A DNA stretch of 31,475 nucleotides, from assembly GCA_024626585.2 (NCBI GenBank), contig JANKJI020000004.1, forward strand, positions 60,556,146 through 60,587,620, in the 5' to 3' direction. This DNA comes from Ginkgo biloba (lineage: Eukaryota > Plantae > Ginkgophyta). The notes below the pieces were generated by a model. The model did no database searches and was not told where the DNA came from. It saw only the letters and a list, made by a program, of their open reading frames with translations. Numbering within the stretch: the first letter of the stretch is position 1; every line of letters starts with the position of its first letter. A program made the translations under genes and the position numbers. This document shows positions 1 through 20,237 of this stretch, in pieces.

Positions 1-961
1 CGGCAGACTTGAAACTCAACGAAAAGATGCAAAATTGGCTCGAAATTTTGTAAATTTTGTGTTGAATAGTTGAAATATGATGCAAAGCGATTAAAAGAAT
101 CGATTTTTCTTCTAAAGGAGCTAAATCTTAAACTTTTGGCCAAAAACAGGGGAAAATGTGGTGTTAAAAGATGTAAATTTAGTGTTACATGACATAAATT
201 GGTGGATTTCGTTGCAAGTATAGTTAAATGTAGTGCAAAACGGTGAAAATTGGTGCAAAATTTATGAAACATAGGTAGAATTGAAAAAAATAGTATAAAC
301 TTTTCTGTAATGTAGGTGGTATTGATGACACCAATGCAATCTGCGAAAATTAAGCTAAAATAGAGAAAGTTGTCGCGGGGAAGGTTTTGCTCAGCTGTGA
401 TATGTTGATGAAGATCTATTTAACTGCCTCGCTGCAAGTTGGCATCGTCGGTGCATAACTGTGTGGGGGACTCAATGCTCTAATTTTTAAGGTATTTCGA
501 CAGAATTCTCAGAGGTGGAGGTAATTTCTGTGATTTATTTGGTTGAATTCGAGGTGGATTTTGTGTAGTATGAGCTTCAATCTAATCCACTGTAAACGCT
601 ATAAGTACCATTTACTTCAATTGAAGAAAACAAGCTCTACTTCAAGCAATTGCGACCTCCAATGAACAAACTTATTCTTTTCACAGTTGCATCAACTTGA
701 TTAAGATTTGATTGACGATAAGCTAACTAAATTATGCATTTGTAGACTTTAGTGAGTGTCCAAGCAACACAAAGATAAAGATCTTATCAAGTGATAAAGT
801 ATGGCACAGAGTAATTGGGAAGAAAATAAGATATAAGTTGAACATTAAGAATATGCGTTTCTGTCTTTTGAGCGCACGAGATCCATTTCTTTTTCTGCAT
901 TTGCTCTTTTGATCCTTCTCCCTTGGACATTAATGATTTTTGTTCCATTTCTTGATTACAG

Positions 962-1059
962 GCTCGATGTGTATATTTATGATTATTTGCTAAAACGAAA
1001 TCTCCATGCATCTGCGAAGGCTTTTATGACCGAGGGAAAAGTCTCCCCGGATCTAATAG
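962..1059 (+). pseudogene. Orphan LisH-domain exon of a LEUNIG/LEUNIG_HOMOLOG (Groucho/Tup1-type co-repressor) gene; gene fragment
   Basis: Bounded by ...ttacag| (AG 960-961) and |gtaggt (GT 1060). Translates (M)LDVYIYDYLLKRNLHASAKAFMTEGKVSPDLI, matching the LUG/LUH N-terminus LDVYIYDYLxKxxLHxxAKxFMTEGKVSPDPV. The preceding WEADKM and following AIDAPGGFLFEWW segments were not found in the window. Confidence 0.85.
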
Positions 1060-1279
1060 GTAGGTATTTATTTTTATTTAATATCCAAGTAGCACAGAAA
1101 TTCAAGCACATGAAATGCAACAGTTGTGAGCTTCGTGTAAAAAAATCCTTAAGCTTTAGGCATTTTACTATAGGAATTTGTTATAGGCATTTCAACAATT
1201 GCTATTCCTCAACCTGTCTGCGATTGCCTTACATTTGTTCTTAATCTCCATTAGCCATTTTGCCAGCTAAAGTTAGAAA

Positions 1280-1845
1280 ATGAAATCTCATCTGGAGCGT
1301 GTCTTCAACTATGACATATTCAGCACTGTCAACGAGCTCACGTAAATTCCTGATGAATTGGAGAAGATTTTAAACCCTCCCACGCGGAATTATGTTCAGG
1401 ACACCAAGGCCATAGCCAGGACAACTGTGGACATCAAGAAAAACTTCAAGGCATATACATTCGTCGCAAATATGCCGGGCCTGAAAGGCTCTGACGTCAA
1501 GGTAAGCATCATACTCCCATTTGCCCTTCGCCAGTTTATTTTTCTTTGAATTTTATTTTTGGCTAATTAGGGTTTTTGTGACTAGTTTTGTAAGTTCAGA
1601 TTGAGGATAATAATGTGCTAACTATCAAGGGTAAACGGAAGCACAAAGCAGTTGAGGTGGACACCAAGTACATTCGTTTGAAAAGGAAACCAGCGAAGTA
1701 TTTGAGAAAAATTGTACTCCCTTCTAAAGCAAATTTAGATAACATTTCAACAATTTGTCAAGACAACATTCTAACTATTACTATTCCCAAATTGCCATCT
1801 CTTGAGCCTGAGAAACCCAAAACAATTGTTATTCTGATGAATTAA
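1280..1845 (+). pseudogene. Cytosolic class II-like small heat shock protein (HSP20/alpha-crystallin) pseudogene, copy 1; exons 1280-1501 and 1594-1845
   Basis: ATG 1280: MKSHLERVFNYDIFSTVNELT*IPDELEKILNPPTRNYVQDTKAIARTTVDIK...ANMPGLKGSDVK|VQIEDNNVLTIKGKRKH...KYIRLKRKPAKYLRKIVLP...CQDNILTITIPKLPSLEPEKPKTIVILMN*. It carries the class II motif resembling PTRxYVRDxKAMAxT. In-frame TAA at 1343-1345; donor GTAAGC at 1502; the expected acceptor AG reads AA (1592-1593). Confidence 0.9.
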
Positions 1846-1982
1846 TTTGTAAAAGAGAATAAATATGCCGGTGATATGTTGTATTAGGAAAGTCAAAAGA
1901 CAAAGATTTTTAGAAAAGCCTTCCATATTTTTATAAAGACAATTTAGAATGGTTATGGAGTGTTTTTCTATAACATAACAAA

Positions 1983-2058
1983 GCTTTAATAAGAAAGTGT
2001 TCCCTGTGACAATTATAGGGCTTTAATAAAAAAATGTTACTCAGTGGCAATTATTTGG
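1983..2058 (+). repeat. Two imperfect ~37-bp tandem units (gctttaataaRaaaRtgtt..c/tgtgRcaattat)
   Basis: Units start at 1983 and 2020. Each contains the left arm of the terminal hairpin. The same pair is present in the inverted copy (~4105-4180). Confidence 0.75.
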
Positions 2059-2959
2059 CACAGGCAACGTACTAATAATTTACCAAAAAAATATAATTTT
2101 TTAAAAAATATATATCACCACACCATCCAAGTTTACCTTAAAAAAAAATTTACAACAAAAATTAAAACAATAGTGATTTTCAAACCATCATTTGATTTTT
2201 TTATGCGTATTAAACATGATATAGTTAGAAAATGACTATTTCCTATACCTCTCACTTTGCAACCCAACATATGAATTTTATACATATTAAAATTAACACA
2301 ATATGCTTAAAACCGTTTCCCTTTCGAACCAACATATGAATTTCATACGTCTTATACGTCGTACATACTCAAACACCCTAACCCTTTCGTCCCTATCGAG
2401 GAATGGAGACATAAACCTCTCGCTTCCCCAAAGAGCTTTCTCTTAATTTTAAATTTCATTTAAGAGCGTGCTTCCTAATAAACACAAACCCGTCAGCAAA
2501 TACCTCCTCCCTCCACGAGCCATCAAAAGCTGTCTGTACTTCTGTTCTCGTGGTGTTATACATTATTGCCATTCCTTTCTTCTCAGAGAAGAATGTTAAG
2601 AAAAAAAAAGCATTTTTGCATTTCCACACCAATTGTAAGATCTAAAACTAAAAATTTACAGTTCCTTCGCTTACTACAGAATCATTAAGAACAGAAGATC
2701 CATTACAGATCACACACATGGTTTCTCTTTAAAATTTAAGATCAAAACAACATAAATATTTTTAGTCATAACACAACCTTCTTTTATCATTGTAATGAAC
2801 CTATAATTTCACGTTGGTACAGAAAATTTATTTATTCATTCATTGAATTATACCATATGCATTCATCTAAATATCCAAATCCTCTAAACCCTCATGCTAT
2901 TACAGTCATGTTAATATCCTAAATCCACATAAAGCCACATGCTATTTCAGTATATGTTT

Positions 2960-3626
2960 CTACTGCACCGCCTTTCCTCCAATCTCTTGCCCTTTCTCTG
3001 ACGAATTCTCAATAATATCTACAATCTTGGCATCCCTTTTCATTTCATCGCTAACCTTGGGCACAGTAACAATCAATACACCGTTTTCCAAATTGGCCTT
3101 AACAGCATCCAAATTCACATTTGCAGGCAACCTGAACTGCCTCCAGAATTTACCAGTAGAACGCTCTACTCTGTGCCATTTGTCAGTTTCTTTCTCTTCT
3201 TCCTTTTATCACTCTCTAATGATCCTCATAACTCTATTCTTCTCTACTTTGATTTTCATCTCCTCTTTGTTCATCCCTGTTTCAAACAATTAACTTACTG
3301 TTAAAACAGATCCGACAAAAACCCTAAAATTTTTTTACAGAAATCCACGATGCAATGGCTTTACCTGGTACATCAATGGTGAAAACATGCGTTTCAGGGG
3401 TTTCCTTCCAGTCGACTCGGGCAAGGGCAACGGCCTCAACATCCTTGGGGACTGAGACGGGGATTTGTTCCAGAACCCTGAAAGGATCCACTAAATCTGA
3501 AGGAATTAAAGAATCCCACAGATTACTGTAACGGCCGGTGAATGGAATCAGAGATTCGCCGGGGGTGAAGAGAGATGCTGTAACTGCGAATAACAACAAA
3601 CCTAGCACCATCTCAGGGTTCATCAT
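2960..3626 (-). pseudogene. ER-targeted small heat shock protein (HSP22/class IV-ER type) pseudogene; exons 3626-3365 and 3276-2960
   Basis: Signal peptide MMNPEMVLGLLLFAVTASLFTPGES, then LIPFTGRYSNLWD...DPFRVLEQIP...[92 protein letters not shown]...AVQ*. 88-nt GT..AG phase-1 intron at 3364-3277. Tandem stops TGA TAA at 3211-3206. Confidence 0.9.
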
Positions 3627-3783
3627 CACTACCTAACGCTCGCTGTAATAATTCTGTCGTTTAGGAACCGTTCTGATGGGGCACTTTACGAATGCTTCTC
3701 CGACTTTCTTCGGACAAATGAATTTTCTGATTGATTGATGTTTTCGCCCAAGTATTTATCATGTATTTTGTAATGACTGTCAA

Positions 3784-3818
3784 GAATCGTCTGGAAATTT
3801 TCTTTTTCTAGAGACTTC
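3784..3818. promoter_or_regulatory. Imperfect heat shock elements upstream of the ER sHSP
   Basis: GAAtcGTCtgGAA (3784-3796) and TTCtaGAGacTTC (3806-3818) fit the alternating nGAAn/nTTCn pattern with one mismatch each, 160-190 bp upstream of the ATG. A TAAATA TATA-like motif lies on the minus strand near 3753-3758. Confidence 0.55.
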
Positions 3819-4087
3819 GTGCTCTGCTTTCAAAAAGATCCTCCTAGAGCTTTCATCATGATCATACACTAAAACATCGTCAACATACTCTATACTTTGG
3901 GAGTCAAAAACTTACATGTGTCTTTCAAACGTGTACAAACATTGTGAAATTTATTAGGTCACCACTTACAATCCCGGAGATAACCGAAACAATACAATTT
4001 TTCTATTCATCCTTTTTGGGATGGAAGTACAATTGTTTGTATTAATCCAATACTTCCTAATTCACAAGTTGTAAGTTTAGTCTAGCA

Positions 4088-4496
4088 CTAGTACGTTTCC
4101 TGTGGCAAATAATTGTCACAGGGAACACTTTTTTATTAAATCCCAATAATTGCCACAAGCAACACTTTCTTATTAAAGCCTTGTTATGTTATAGAAAAAC
4201 ACTGCATAACCATTCTAAATTATCTTTTCAAAAATATGGAAGGCTTTTCTAGAAATCTCTCTGTGTTTTGACTTTCCTAATACAACATATCACTGACATA
4301 TTTATTCTCCTTTACAAATCAATTTATTGGAATAACAATTGTTTTGGGTTTCTCAAGCTCAGGAGATGGCAATTTGGAAATAGTAATAGTCGGAATGTCG
4401 TCTTGACAAATTGTTGAAATGCTATCTAAATTGCTTTTGAAGGGAGTACAAATTTTCTCAAATACTTGGTTGGTTTCCTTTTCAAACGAATGTACT
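4088..4496 (-). mobile_element. Putative gene-capturing Helitron, copy 2 (3' end; truncated by the assembly gap)
   Basis: Reverse complement of 1667-2075 (roughly 90% identical by eye). Hairpin 4099-4122 (CCTGTGGCAA-ataa-TTGTCACAGG), 7-nt spacer, then terminal CTAG (4091-4088) followed by T on the minus strand. Confidence 0.7.
4319..4496 (-). pseudogene. Class II-like sHSP pseudogene, copy 2 (3' part of exon 2)
   Basis: YIRLKRKPTKYLRKFVLPSKA, then a 1-bp deletion relative to copy 1 (GCA ATT TAG), then ...CQDDIPTITISKLPSPELEKPKTIVIPIN* (TGA 4321-4319). The 5' part runs into Ns. Confidence 0.85.
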
Positions 4497-4596
4497 NNNN
4501 NNNNNNNNNNNNNNNNNNNNNNNNNNNNNNNNNNNNNNNNNNNNNNNNNNNNNNNNNNNNNNNNNNNNNNNNNNNNNNNNNNNNNNNNNNNNNNNN

Positions 4597-4845
4597 GATC
4601 AATTCTTCTCTACTCTATGTACAATTTCCTACAATTATATACAATAGGCAGACGGTTATGTAACCGCTGCGGAAGTTACAACAGACTTCTGTCCTTTGTC
4701 GGCGCAGCATCCTTTGTCGGTGGATCCAAGCTTCGTCGGTGAACCTCCGTCGGTGTCGGCGAAGCCGTGACCCATGCTGTCTGTGGGTTCTTGACTGACG
4801 ATGTCGACGGAGCCTTGGCCGACCATGTCGGATGCCCGTCCAACA
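4597..4845 (-). mobile_element. Probable LTR 5' portion (U3 and TATA) of a relatively young LTR retrotransposon
   Basis: The minus strand begins TGTTGGA at 4845 with an abrupt switch to GC/CpG-rich sequence containing repeated CCGAC motifs, then tgtatataattgta and a purine-rich stretch, ending at the gap. No second LTR, PBS or TSD is visible. Confidence 0.5.
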
Positions 4846-5379
4846 ATGGGATATGGAGGAAAGATTTAAATAAAGAGTCACTACTAGAAGAGGTGGTGAA
4901 ACAAATGATTCTAAATAAAATTTGTACATTCATCATCCATGGTGATGAGGAAGATTACAAAGAAAGACTCTAAACTGAACGACAAACTAAGTACATGGGA
5001 TTTAGTTGGAGGAGACAATGAAAGGGAAGGACCATTCATCCTAATGATTAAAAGGATATAACTTAGGTCAAATCCATAGTTCCCAACCATCATATAATCA
5101 TTTAGAAGAGTAGGTGATAGGATAGTGAATGTGCACCTTAGGTTGGGTCTTTAGAGGTCTTTAATATAGTTTACATAAAATGTAAAGAGAGGTACTAAGC
5201 AAAGTAATGTGATGGATTCTTTGAGCTTTGATCATTGTAATCAAGTCCAACTTGATAATCCAAATCCTTATCTCCCTAAGGAGTTGTTAAAAGACAAATT
5301 TGCGGTGCCATGCCACCCCATCATGATAACCCTTATTATGCATTCTCCAAAATTGATAGAGTGTCTTTTTAAATATTAA

Positions 5380-18100: not shown

Positions 18101-19328
18101 AATATGACATACACCATAAGGTATAGTTTGTATGAGATTTTGGTTATATCATTTATGTCATAAAATTATTAGATGGAAACCTTTTGTACTCATATGAATG
18201 ATAAATTTTGGCCTTATCTTGACAAGTCCATTACAACATATAAGGGGAAATAGTAATATATAATGCAAAATAAATAGAGAACTGACACTAGTTATAAATT
18301 ATTTTAATTTAAATTAGCCTTGAGACCATATTCCATCAAGAACCCAAAAGATCATATTTTTCATGAGGTATGGGTGGAGACCTAAGAGCAATATCTATAA
18401 ATACCCAATTGGCATTGTTTATGGTTGAGACTAGGATTGTACATGATCATCTTTATGCCCCCAACTAATGTATTTAAAGTGTAAACTTTCTTCGAGTGCA
18501 CTCTTTTTTTTTAAAGTGATGTCTTCATAGCCATCACTTAGCTAATTAACTCTAAAAGTAATCACCTATAAAAAGGATAGGATGGTGGATGCACATCGAA
18601 AAGCAAACTAGTTGGGCCAATTCAAGATCTGACTATAAGATTATTGATTGTAATAACTTAAATAACATATACTATTGGAACTAGAATTACCATGACCATT
18701 GACATTGGACTCGCCCTCCAATGGATCCTCATTAAGGGATTTAGATTATACTCATTCTAATTATCATACTCGATGAGGCTAATATTGTGATTTATTATCA
18801 CCACCTCTCTATTAGTACTGGACAATTTGTATGGCTATCACCTTCCTTAGATGTGGTAATTATTTATGAAGCTCCCAAACTAGAAGTAAAGCCTAATTAT
18901 TGATCACTCATATTCACACTTATGGATGCACTACTTGATCTTTGAGATAAGCACGCTGACTTGTAGTCAAATACATTAGACCTATGTATCTTTTCCTAAT
19001 ATTATTCTTATGACTTAAAAGTATACGAATACATAGTATCTAGATTATATCCATTCAAAGAGCTCTCATAATTAGAGAGGCGACATTAGGTATAGTGGAG
19101 ATACAATCTCAATAAGCAGAACCATATACATTATAAGCTTGCTCATATAGCATTCATCCATGCTGATATACTTTATAAATGGGGATTAAGAGGGGCATTA
19201 ATCTGCTAAATACGTCAATCAAGGCCAAGAAAATCTAAACCACCTTTGGTGGTAGTGTCTTCAATTCAAATAAGAATGATCTAGCATTTACTTTCTAAGT
19301 TATTTAAAATTGATCACGAGGGATACAT
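15138..19328 (+). mobile_element. Old degenerate Ty3/gypsy-like LTR element with two diverged direct repeats
   Basis: Direct repeats 15138-15518 and 18936-19327. A degenerate PBS-like TGGATAAGAAC follows the first (15524). Weak integrase-like traces: VVD* followed, after a frameshift, by KY (about 17570-17595) and KYDIHH...F (about 18100-18130). The repeat is certain; the LTR interpretation is moderate. Confidence 0.5.
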
Positions 19329-19532: not shown

Positions 19533-20237
19533 CTAGGATGCATCAGACCAGGTGATTTCGTAGTCTCCGACGTCGGAGCCGTGGATTCCCAACGCATCCC
19601 AGACAGCGGGGGAGGCGTCGACCACGTTGTTGGGACAGGGGGGCTGGAAGTCGTGATCGGAGTCGCAGCCGTTGACAGAATCGCATTCATCGACGACCAT
19701 GGCCTGAACGGTGACGCCGTTGGCAGTGATGCGAATGTTGTTTAAGCAACGGCTACCGCCGTTGTACCAGCCGGTGGAGAGAGCAACGACCATCTCGTCG
19801 TCGTCGTGGAAGCGACCGTCGCATTCGGAGGCGCCTCCGCCGTCCCCTCCCTTTGCGAAGCTGTTGATGGTCATGGTGGCCGGCGTGTTGTCTGAGATGG
19901 ATGGAGAGCAGTGGTACTGCGGGTACTCCTTCCCGGCTACGCAGCAATCGGAGTCGTGCTGTCTGTTGCACTTACCTGTTCGCCCGGTTAAGTGTCCGCT
20001 GGCTTTGCAATTGCCGCTGCCGCTGCCGCTGCCAGGGTCGGAACACACGTGGCTTCCTACATCCGGATCGTCTGTACACTTTCCATCTACGCATACCAGC
20101 TGCCCCGGACAGTCGTTGAGCGTCTGGCATGAGTCTCCGCATCCGCTCTTCTGAGCTGCTGCAGTACATGAATACCACAACACTGCAATTGCCATTCCCA
20201 ATTTCAACCAAACGTACACCCCCGCCCCCATTCTCAT
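19533..20237 (-). CDS. Kiwellin / ripening-related (Grip22-like) secreted protein with N-terminal Kissper domain and double-psi beta-barrel domain, 234 aa
   Basis: Intact intronless GC-rich ORF with a signal peptide. Kissper-like [40 protein letters not shown] linker, then DSDCC...[75 protein letters not shown] and ITWSDA. Confidence 0.96.

Follow-up and report, generated by a model that had tools for sequence, protein, structure and literature searches.

Inverted small heat shock protein pseudogenes with Helitron-like 3' ends at a locus of Ginkgo biloba

We analysed a 31,475-bp stretch of the Ginkgo biloba genome (assembly GCA_024626585.2, contig JANKJI020000004.1, positions 60,556,146 to 60,587,620 of the forward strand), referred to below as the window and numbered from its first base. 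As a draft plant scaffold, the window contains 17 runs of N, none of them in its left part, positions 1–4496. This part carries three sequences related to small heat shock protein (sHSP) genes: copies A and B, which are inverted relative to each other, and an sHSP of the endoplasmic reticulum (ER) type between them; a piece resembling the 5' part of a LEUNIG or LUH gene is situated upstream of copy A. A first-pass annotation, made from the sequence alone, had proposed that copies A and B are two sister Helitrons carrying a captured sHSP gene, placed tail-to-tail around an ER sHSP gene. Our analysis points to an old, non-autonomous, gene-carrying Helitron pair as the probable origin of the two copies, and we would put the probability of this reading at roughly 55%.

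The positions 1667–2074 and 4496–4089 are inverted copies with 90.0% identity over 410 columns (blastn, E = 3e-157), and the repeat search of the window resolved them into the collinear inverted arms 1667–1735/4428–4496, 1732–1911/4253–4432 and 1895–2038/4124–4267. Blastn, MAFFT and the repeat search were concordant, and confirmed what had been noticed at first reading, namely inverted copies at 1667–2075 and 4088–4496 whose homology ends at CTAA|T and CTAG|T. The break is sharp: homology stops at ...AACGTACTAA|T in copy A (position 2075) and at ...AACGTACTAG|T in copy B (position 4088), and in the MAFFT alignment the identity drops from about 90% to about 46% right past ...AACGTACTA[A/G]T, the latter figure being that of a forced alignment of AT-rich DNA. 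The 3' flanks of the two copies are unrelated. Within the copies, coding sequence (91.6% identity) and non-coding tail (90.0%) have diverged equally, which shows neutral drift since their separation.

The opposite limit of the repeat is of another kind. Copy B, on the minus strand at 4088–4496, holds the 3' portion of sHSP exon 2 and then the tail, with a hairpin at 4122–4099 and the terminal CTAG at 4091–4088, and is truncated at 4497 by an assembly gap of 100 N (4497–4596) that conceals its remainder. Since copy B runs into this gap, the outer limit at 1667/4496, initially taken as a boundary of the repeat, is a gap artefact and not a biological boundary. Immediately right of the gap, at 4640–4860, some 200 bp of GC-rich sequence contain seven or more CCGAC/GTCGG cores and form a block similar to the subterminal repeats of transposons with terminal inverted repeats (TIRs) or to a cluster of DRE-like (dehydration-responsive element) motifs; it may be what breaks up copy B. 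An origin of the whole arrangement as an assembly artefact was considered unlikely, since no gap interrupts the sequence from copy A through the spacer to copy B (1–4496) and the two copies are 10% divergent.

Spliced sHSP models were searched exon by exon. Copy A begins on the plus strand with a class II-like sHSP exon 1 (1280–1501), which is interrupted by an in-frame TAA at 1343–1345; it is followed by an intron of about 92 nt (1502–1593), in which one of the splice sites is non-canonical (GT..AA or TA..AG), and by exon 2 (1594–1845), which holds the alpha-crystallin domain and the stop codon, has an open frame and is strongly diverged in sequence. Exon 2 matched the Pfam HSP20 family (PF00011, E = 1.8e-11). 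The intron is real: the spliced Logan transcript L001, which encodes P0151 and represents a related gymnosperm gene, aligns to 1349–1503 and 1594–1834 with nothing between them. Retention of this intron excludes retroposition of a mature mRNA, and a retroposed copy was rejected on this ground together with the lack of a poly(A) tail after the end of the copy. Copy B has suffered a 1-nt deletion near 4431 which shifts its frame. With the TAA in exon 1 of copy A and the frameshift in copy B, both copies, read in the first-pass annotation as carrying a captured sHSP gene, are pseudogenes.

In both copies sHSP exon 2 runs unbroken into the terminus, and the sHSP would consequently be cargo if this end is a Helitron terminus. 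In copy A, the part between the stop codon and the end is a non-coding tail (1846–2075, plus strand), which holds a tandem duplication, a degenerate hairpin and the terminal CTAA, followed by T and a very AT-rich flank.

Between the copies, on the minus strand at 2960–3629, is the ER-type sHSP, with exon 1 at 3629–3365, an intron at 3364–3277 and exon 2 at 3276–2960. The HSP20 domain was recognised at 2963–3205 (Pfam, E = 1.9e-18), and the translation starts with a hydrophobic, signal-peptide-like N-terminus and contains the motif DPFRVLEQIP; from these two features we presume the sequence to belong to the ER class. No KDEL-like C-terminal ER retention signal was seen in its translation, and protein searches with its exon 1 returned nothing informative. 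Two adjacent in-frame stops, TGA TAA, occupy positions 3211–3206 in place of the conserved SGER, so that what had been described as an ER sHSP gene is, as assembled, a pseudogene, and all three sHSPs of the locus are dead. Measured from this sequence, the end of one flanking copy is found 459 bp upstream of the ATG, and 885 bp separate the stop from the end of the other, downstream copy. It should be added that motifs similar to a heat shock element and a TATA box are still discernible about 130–200 bp upstream of this ATG, and that a tandem duplication of 45 nt x2 (2863–2951) directly follows the stop on its 3' side.

Upstream of copy A and on the same strand, only 218 bp before its ATG, ends the LUH/LEUNIG-like piece. 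Its start-codon exon (801–832, plus strand) encodes MAQSNWEENK and ends two bases into the following codon; SNWE was located at 810 by six-frame search, and the assignment is based on the N-terminus of LUH, which we take to be MAQSNWEADKM. The donor of this exon is AT in place of the expected GT. The LisH exon (962–1061, plus strand; Pfam LisH, PF08513, E = 1.6e-08) follows 130 bp downstream and is bordered by an AG acceptor and a GT donor. The LEUNIG exon that had been suspected near copy A is present as the LisH exon, and the piece is larger than was first stated, consisting of a start-codon exon, an intron and the LisH exon.

No later LUH exon was recognised by the motifs FEWW, WSVFWD or ARTNEK in any of the six frames of the whole window. 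With only the start-codon and LisH exons present and the later LUH motifs missing from the window, the piece is a fragment and not a gene, and does not qualify as a LEUNIG/LUH co-repressor. We also considered a real LUH gene with a long intron that encloses the sHSPs. Introns of great length do occur in Ginkgo and the window has 17 gaps, so that such a gene is to be called only unlikely, on account of the lack of any later exon in the remaining 30 kb, the altered conserved residues and the AT donor.

The anatomy of the shared end carries the Helitron interpretation. These elements are recognised by a 5' TC, a 3' CTRR with a palindrome of 16–20 bp close to it, and integration between A and T (PMC2575219, PMC4778049). 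The final bases common to the two copies are CTAA at 2072–2075 in copy A and CTAG at 4091–4088 (minus strand) in copy B, each thus a CTRR as at the 3' end of canonical plant Helitrons, and T is the next base in both. Furthermore, a hairpin of 24 nt (10+4+10) at 2041–2064 and 4099–4122 ends 11 nt short of the terminus in either copy, which places it as in canonical plant Helitrons, with imperfect stems. The stem of copy B has 9/10 pairs and one mismatch (dG -7.0 kcal/mol, z -2.1), and that of copy A 7/10 pairs and three mismatches (dG -5.6, z -1.06). The hairpins differ between the copies at four positions, and because one of the copies retains the pairing base at each of these, a perfect ancestral 10-bp stem, CCTGTGGCAA/TTGCCACAGG, may be proposed as the most parsimonious reconstruction, which is biased toward that result by the picking of the pairing state at every position. 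The hairpin had been correctly placed 11 nt before the terminus by the first-pass annotation; the perfect consensus stem given there is present in neither copy.

The frequency of such an arrangement was assessed in the window itself. CTRR|T occurs at 232 sites on the two strands, and a hairpin was counted as qualifying when a 10-bp stem with at most one mismatch ended 5–15 nt upstream of CTRR|T. Besides the end at 4088, only two sites had such a hairpin among about 56,000 strand positions, at 18545 (plus strand) and 31378 (minus strand), and on inspection both resembled A+T-rich chance hairpins. This corresponds to about 4e-5 per position, or about 1e-4 when an ambiguity of 2–3 nt in the placement of the boundary is allowed for. 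It is therefore very unlikely that the breakpoint of a duplication fell on CTRR|T with a hairpin by chance, and no other single explanation accounts for the shared end as well as a Helitron 3' terminus does, given how seldom this anatomy is met with at random positions.

This estimate bears most directly on a plain local inverted segmental duplication, in which a decaying class II-like sHSP pseudogene of a local cluster would have given rise, for instance by replication template switching or break repair, to a partial inverted copy 2 kb away, the Helitron-like motif being coincidental. We regard such an event as a serious though clearly less probable explanation. It has the merit that the closeness of the copies needs no special explanation: no more than two are seen, with 2 kb between them on a contig free of gaps, and sHSP genes are often clustered, as the three sHSP-derived sequences within 3.3 kb illustrate here. 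It has to accept, however, a breakpoint hitting the terminal anatomy at the frequency given above, and it offers no explanation for the LUH 5' fragment next to the sHSP. Local inverted segmental duplications known from sHSP clusters do share with the present locus close paralogues in mixed orientation, pseudogene decay and signs of exchange, but ordinary duplications of this type do not predict homology that ends at CTRR|T with a hairpin 11 nt upstream.

The terminus has no inverted partner, its reverse complement occurring in the window only at the two termini themselves; there are thus no terminal inverted repeats within the window, and the copies are not a TIR element. A TIR or Pack-MULE element ending at 2075 was rejected within the window for the same reason, and because no other repeat links 1–2300 to the rest. 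Pack-MULE and Pack-TIR elements resemble the locus in being mosaics of intron-containing host gene fragments; they need TIRs and a target-site duplication, whereas here the terminus lacks an inverted partner in the window.

Another repeat unit altogether, such as a larger composite, a Pack-type TIR element or a long foldback with its true ends in the gap or upstream of the window, appears unlikely to us. Under it, the inner ends would reflect a later deletion or insertion and not a transposon terminus. The outer part of copy B is indeed concealed by the gap, copy A may extend further in the 5' direction, and the GC-rich CCGAC/GTCGG block right of the gap resembles transposon subterminal repeats. 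Against this stand the missing inverted partner of the 3' end and the lack of any other repeat common to 1–2300 and the rest of the window. Moreover, such a unit does not predict the CTRR and hairpin anatomy, and a foldback with a unique, sHSP-containing spacer of 2 kb would still need its inner ends at one homologous position.

The relatives of the cargo were searched for among known proteins. An exhaustive HMMER search with exon 2 returned one protein with 74% identity and one with 66%, all others showing about 50% or less. The first is Ginkgo biloba Gb_20986 (157 aa, intact), to which exon 2 of copy A is identical in 62/83 residues of the alignment, and the second is Gb_18132, which is degenerate; a third close Ginkgo protein is Gb_09555. 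The HSP20 domain and the best matches, to Gb_20986 (74%) and to 17.x kDa class II HSP proteins, place the sHSP of the copies in the cytosolic class II. Gb_20986 is parent-like and, from these similarities, a candidate parent of the cargo. Copies A and B share the derived residues LKRKP, SKA and TITI, and some of their derived residues (IST, QDN/D-I) are found in Gb_18132 and Gb_09555 as well; G>A / C>T changes predominate in the alignment. The sHSP lineage is thus multi-copy in Ginkgo, with at least five members. Outside Ginkgo, the Logan transcripts L001–L007 (SRR8442332 and others) encode P0151, an expressed, orthologue-like sHSP of 158 aa that is 75% identical to Gb_20986. This expressed protein, from a gymnosperm-like source, shows conservation and function beyond Ginkgo for the divergent class II-like subfamily (ERKPAKYLRKFVLPSDANLD ... 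IPVN). Exact look-ups of the open reading frames of the window were unproductive.

On the Helitron reading, copy A (at least 1280–2075, with a possible start at the LUH-like fragment near 800) and copy B (from 4088 to past the gap) would be decayed copies of one element, whose cargo would be a whole intron-containing class II-like sHSP gene related to Gb_20986. A RepHel transposase acting in trans would have read the 10-bp hairpin, the 7-nt spacer and CTAG as a rolling-circle stop, by analogy with the established Helitron model. Each copy would then have entered AT-rich host DNA between A and T, with no duplication of the target site, in such a way that the insertions flank the ER-type sHSP gene with their 3' ends face to face. 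Afterwards, neutral drift would have brought the copies to about 10% divergence, while stops or a frameshift were gained in the cargo and in the ER-type gene.

Several features are consistent with this scheme. The base following each terminus is T, and copy A is followed on its 3' side by strongly AT-rich sequence. The LUH 5' part and the sHSP, which are unrelated, lie on the same strand 218 bp apart and would fit a mosaic typical of Helitron cargo. The multi-copy state of the sHSP lineage in Ginkgo, and the derived residues that Gb_18132 has in common with copies A and B, also speak for it. As to the 5' side, several A|TC sites exist upstream of copy A, for example near 415, 579 and 780, none of which can be singled out as the 5' end, and the 5' junction of copy B lies inside the N gap. 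Apart from a kiwellin gene described below, no long open reading frame was found in the window. The repeat, its sharp end and the anatomy of that end, the pseudogene state of the sHSPs and the further Ginkgo paralogues are shown directly; transposition itself, the 5' extent of the element and the membership of the LUH fragment in it are what we infer. The proposal that a Helitron carries an sHSP is supported in part, gaining from CTRR|T, the hairpin at 11 nt, the AT-rich flank, the continuity of the sHSP with the end, the intron and the lack of TIRs, and losing from the observation of only two copies.

A number of observations weigh against the Helitron origin. Firstly, only two copies with the shared terminus were examined, and no further one exists within the window; nor did blastn find any match to 1–1666 right of the gap at 4497–4596 or elsewhere in the 31 kb. 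A scan of metagenome contigs with the terminus pattern gave 0 matches. Secondly, the hairpin of copy A is weak, as 29/200 shuffled sequences (14%) fold equally well, and its 5' arm and loop are supplied by the last part of a 37-nt tandem duplication (1983–2054, x1.9). Thirdly, two independent insertions 2 kb apart in a genome of about 10 Gb demand a special explanation. Finally, exon 1 of copy A is identical to Gb_09555 in 73/73 residues and to Gb_20986 in 66/73, but exon 2 matches Gb_09555 in only 39/58 (67%; Fisher p = 2.7e-8). Peptides of Gb_09555 exon 2 were not found in the window. Either the paralogues have undergone gene conversion or the Gb_09555 gene model is chimeric, and the history of such a mosaic unit is not accounted for by a simple picture of one element with two copies. 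This pattern of identity also points to recombination or gene conversion, and fits the evolution of an sHSP cluster without transposable elements, as a segmental duplication would have it.

The closeness of the two insertions had been attributed at first reading to local hopping or to a preference for heat-shock loci. Experimental data on Helitrons are known only from Helraiser. This element shows no local hopping (PMC4778049), which disfavours the former. The same element is enriched in active promoters (7.3-fold for highly expressed genes) and open chromatin, and prefers an AT-rich 3' flank (PMC4778049). Attraction of the insertions to an open heat-shock promoter is possible; with n=2 it is unsupported, and a preference for heat-shock loci cannot be deduced from two copies.

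Comparison with known systems places the locus nearest to the plant non-autonomous Helitrons with gene fragments of maize, rice and Arabidopsis (PMC2575219), which likewise have a CTRR end, a subterminal palindrome and T as the next base, lack TIRs, and carry parts of unrelated host genes, introns included, on a single strand. They differ from the present case in that the cargo here would be an entire sHSP gene of two exons, that the host, Ginkgo, is a gymnosperm, and that the hairpin has decayed and is richer in A+T. Should the LUH-like piece form part of the element, the architecture would also be that of HelibatN3 of Myotis, which captured the promoter, first coding exon and splice donor of NUBPL (PMC4778049), in that a start-codon exon, an intron and a second exon with an intact donor would lie near the 5' side. 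In contrast to HelibatN3, the first donor of the LUH-like piece is mutated from GT to AT, and neither mobility together with the sHSP nor the driving of transcripts is in evidence here.

Substitution rates of gymnosperms are usually assumed to be slow, and at such rates a divergence of about 10% would, by our estimate, imply tens of millions of years since the copies separated. Helitrons and Helitron-mediated gene capture have been annotated by pipelines (EDTA, HelitronScanner, HELIANO) in gymnosperms including Ginkgo (PMC13477047); individually documented cases of capture are few there, most of the record being pipeline annotation (PMC13477047). If correct, our reading would give Ginkgo a concrete case in which an entire stress gene of two exons was moved by a Helitron, and would warn against taking sHSP paralogues that lie close together for tandem duplicates in every case. 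In practice the finding carries little weight, the three sHSPs being dead, the copies old (~10% diverged) and gene capture by Helitrons well established elsewhere. A far bolder scenario can be imagined, in which a Ginkgo Helitron family has, over tens of millions of years, borne a complete, intron-containing sHSP gene together with a promoter/first-exon module of LUH, preferring the constitutively open chromatin of heat-shock loci and building part of the sHSP cluster by transposition instead of tandem duplication, and in which the inverted repeat of 410 bp or more could feed hairpin small interfering RNAs against the sHSP lineage; we hold this to be highly improbable.

The remainder of the window contains a single-exon kiwellin gene at 19536–20237 on the minus strand (PF24300, E = 2.6e-61), with a Cys-rich N-terminal region. 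It is intact, and is the sole apparently intact gene in the window.

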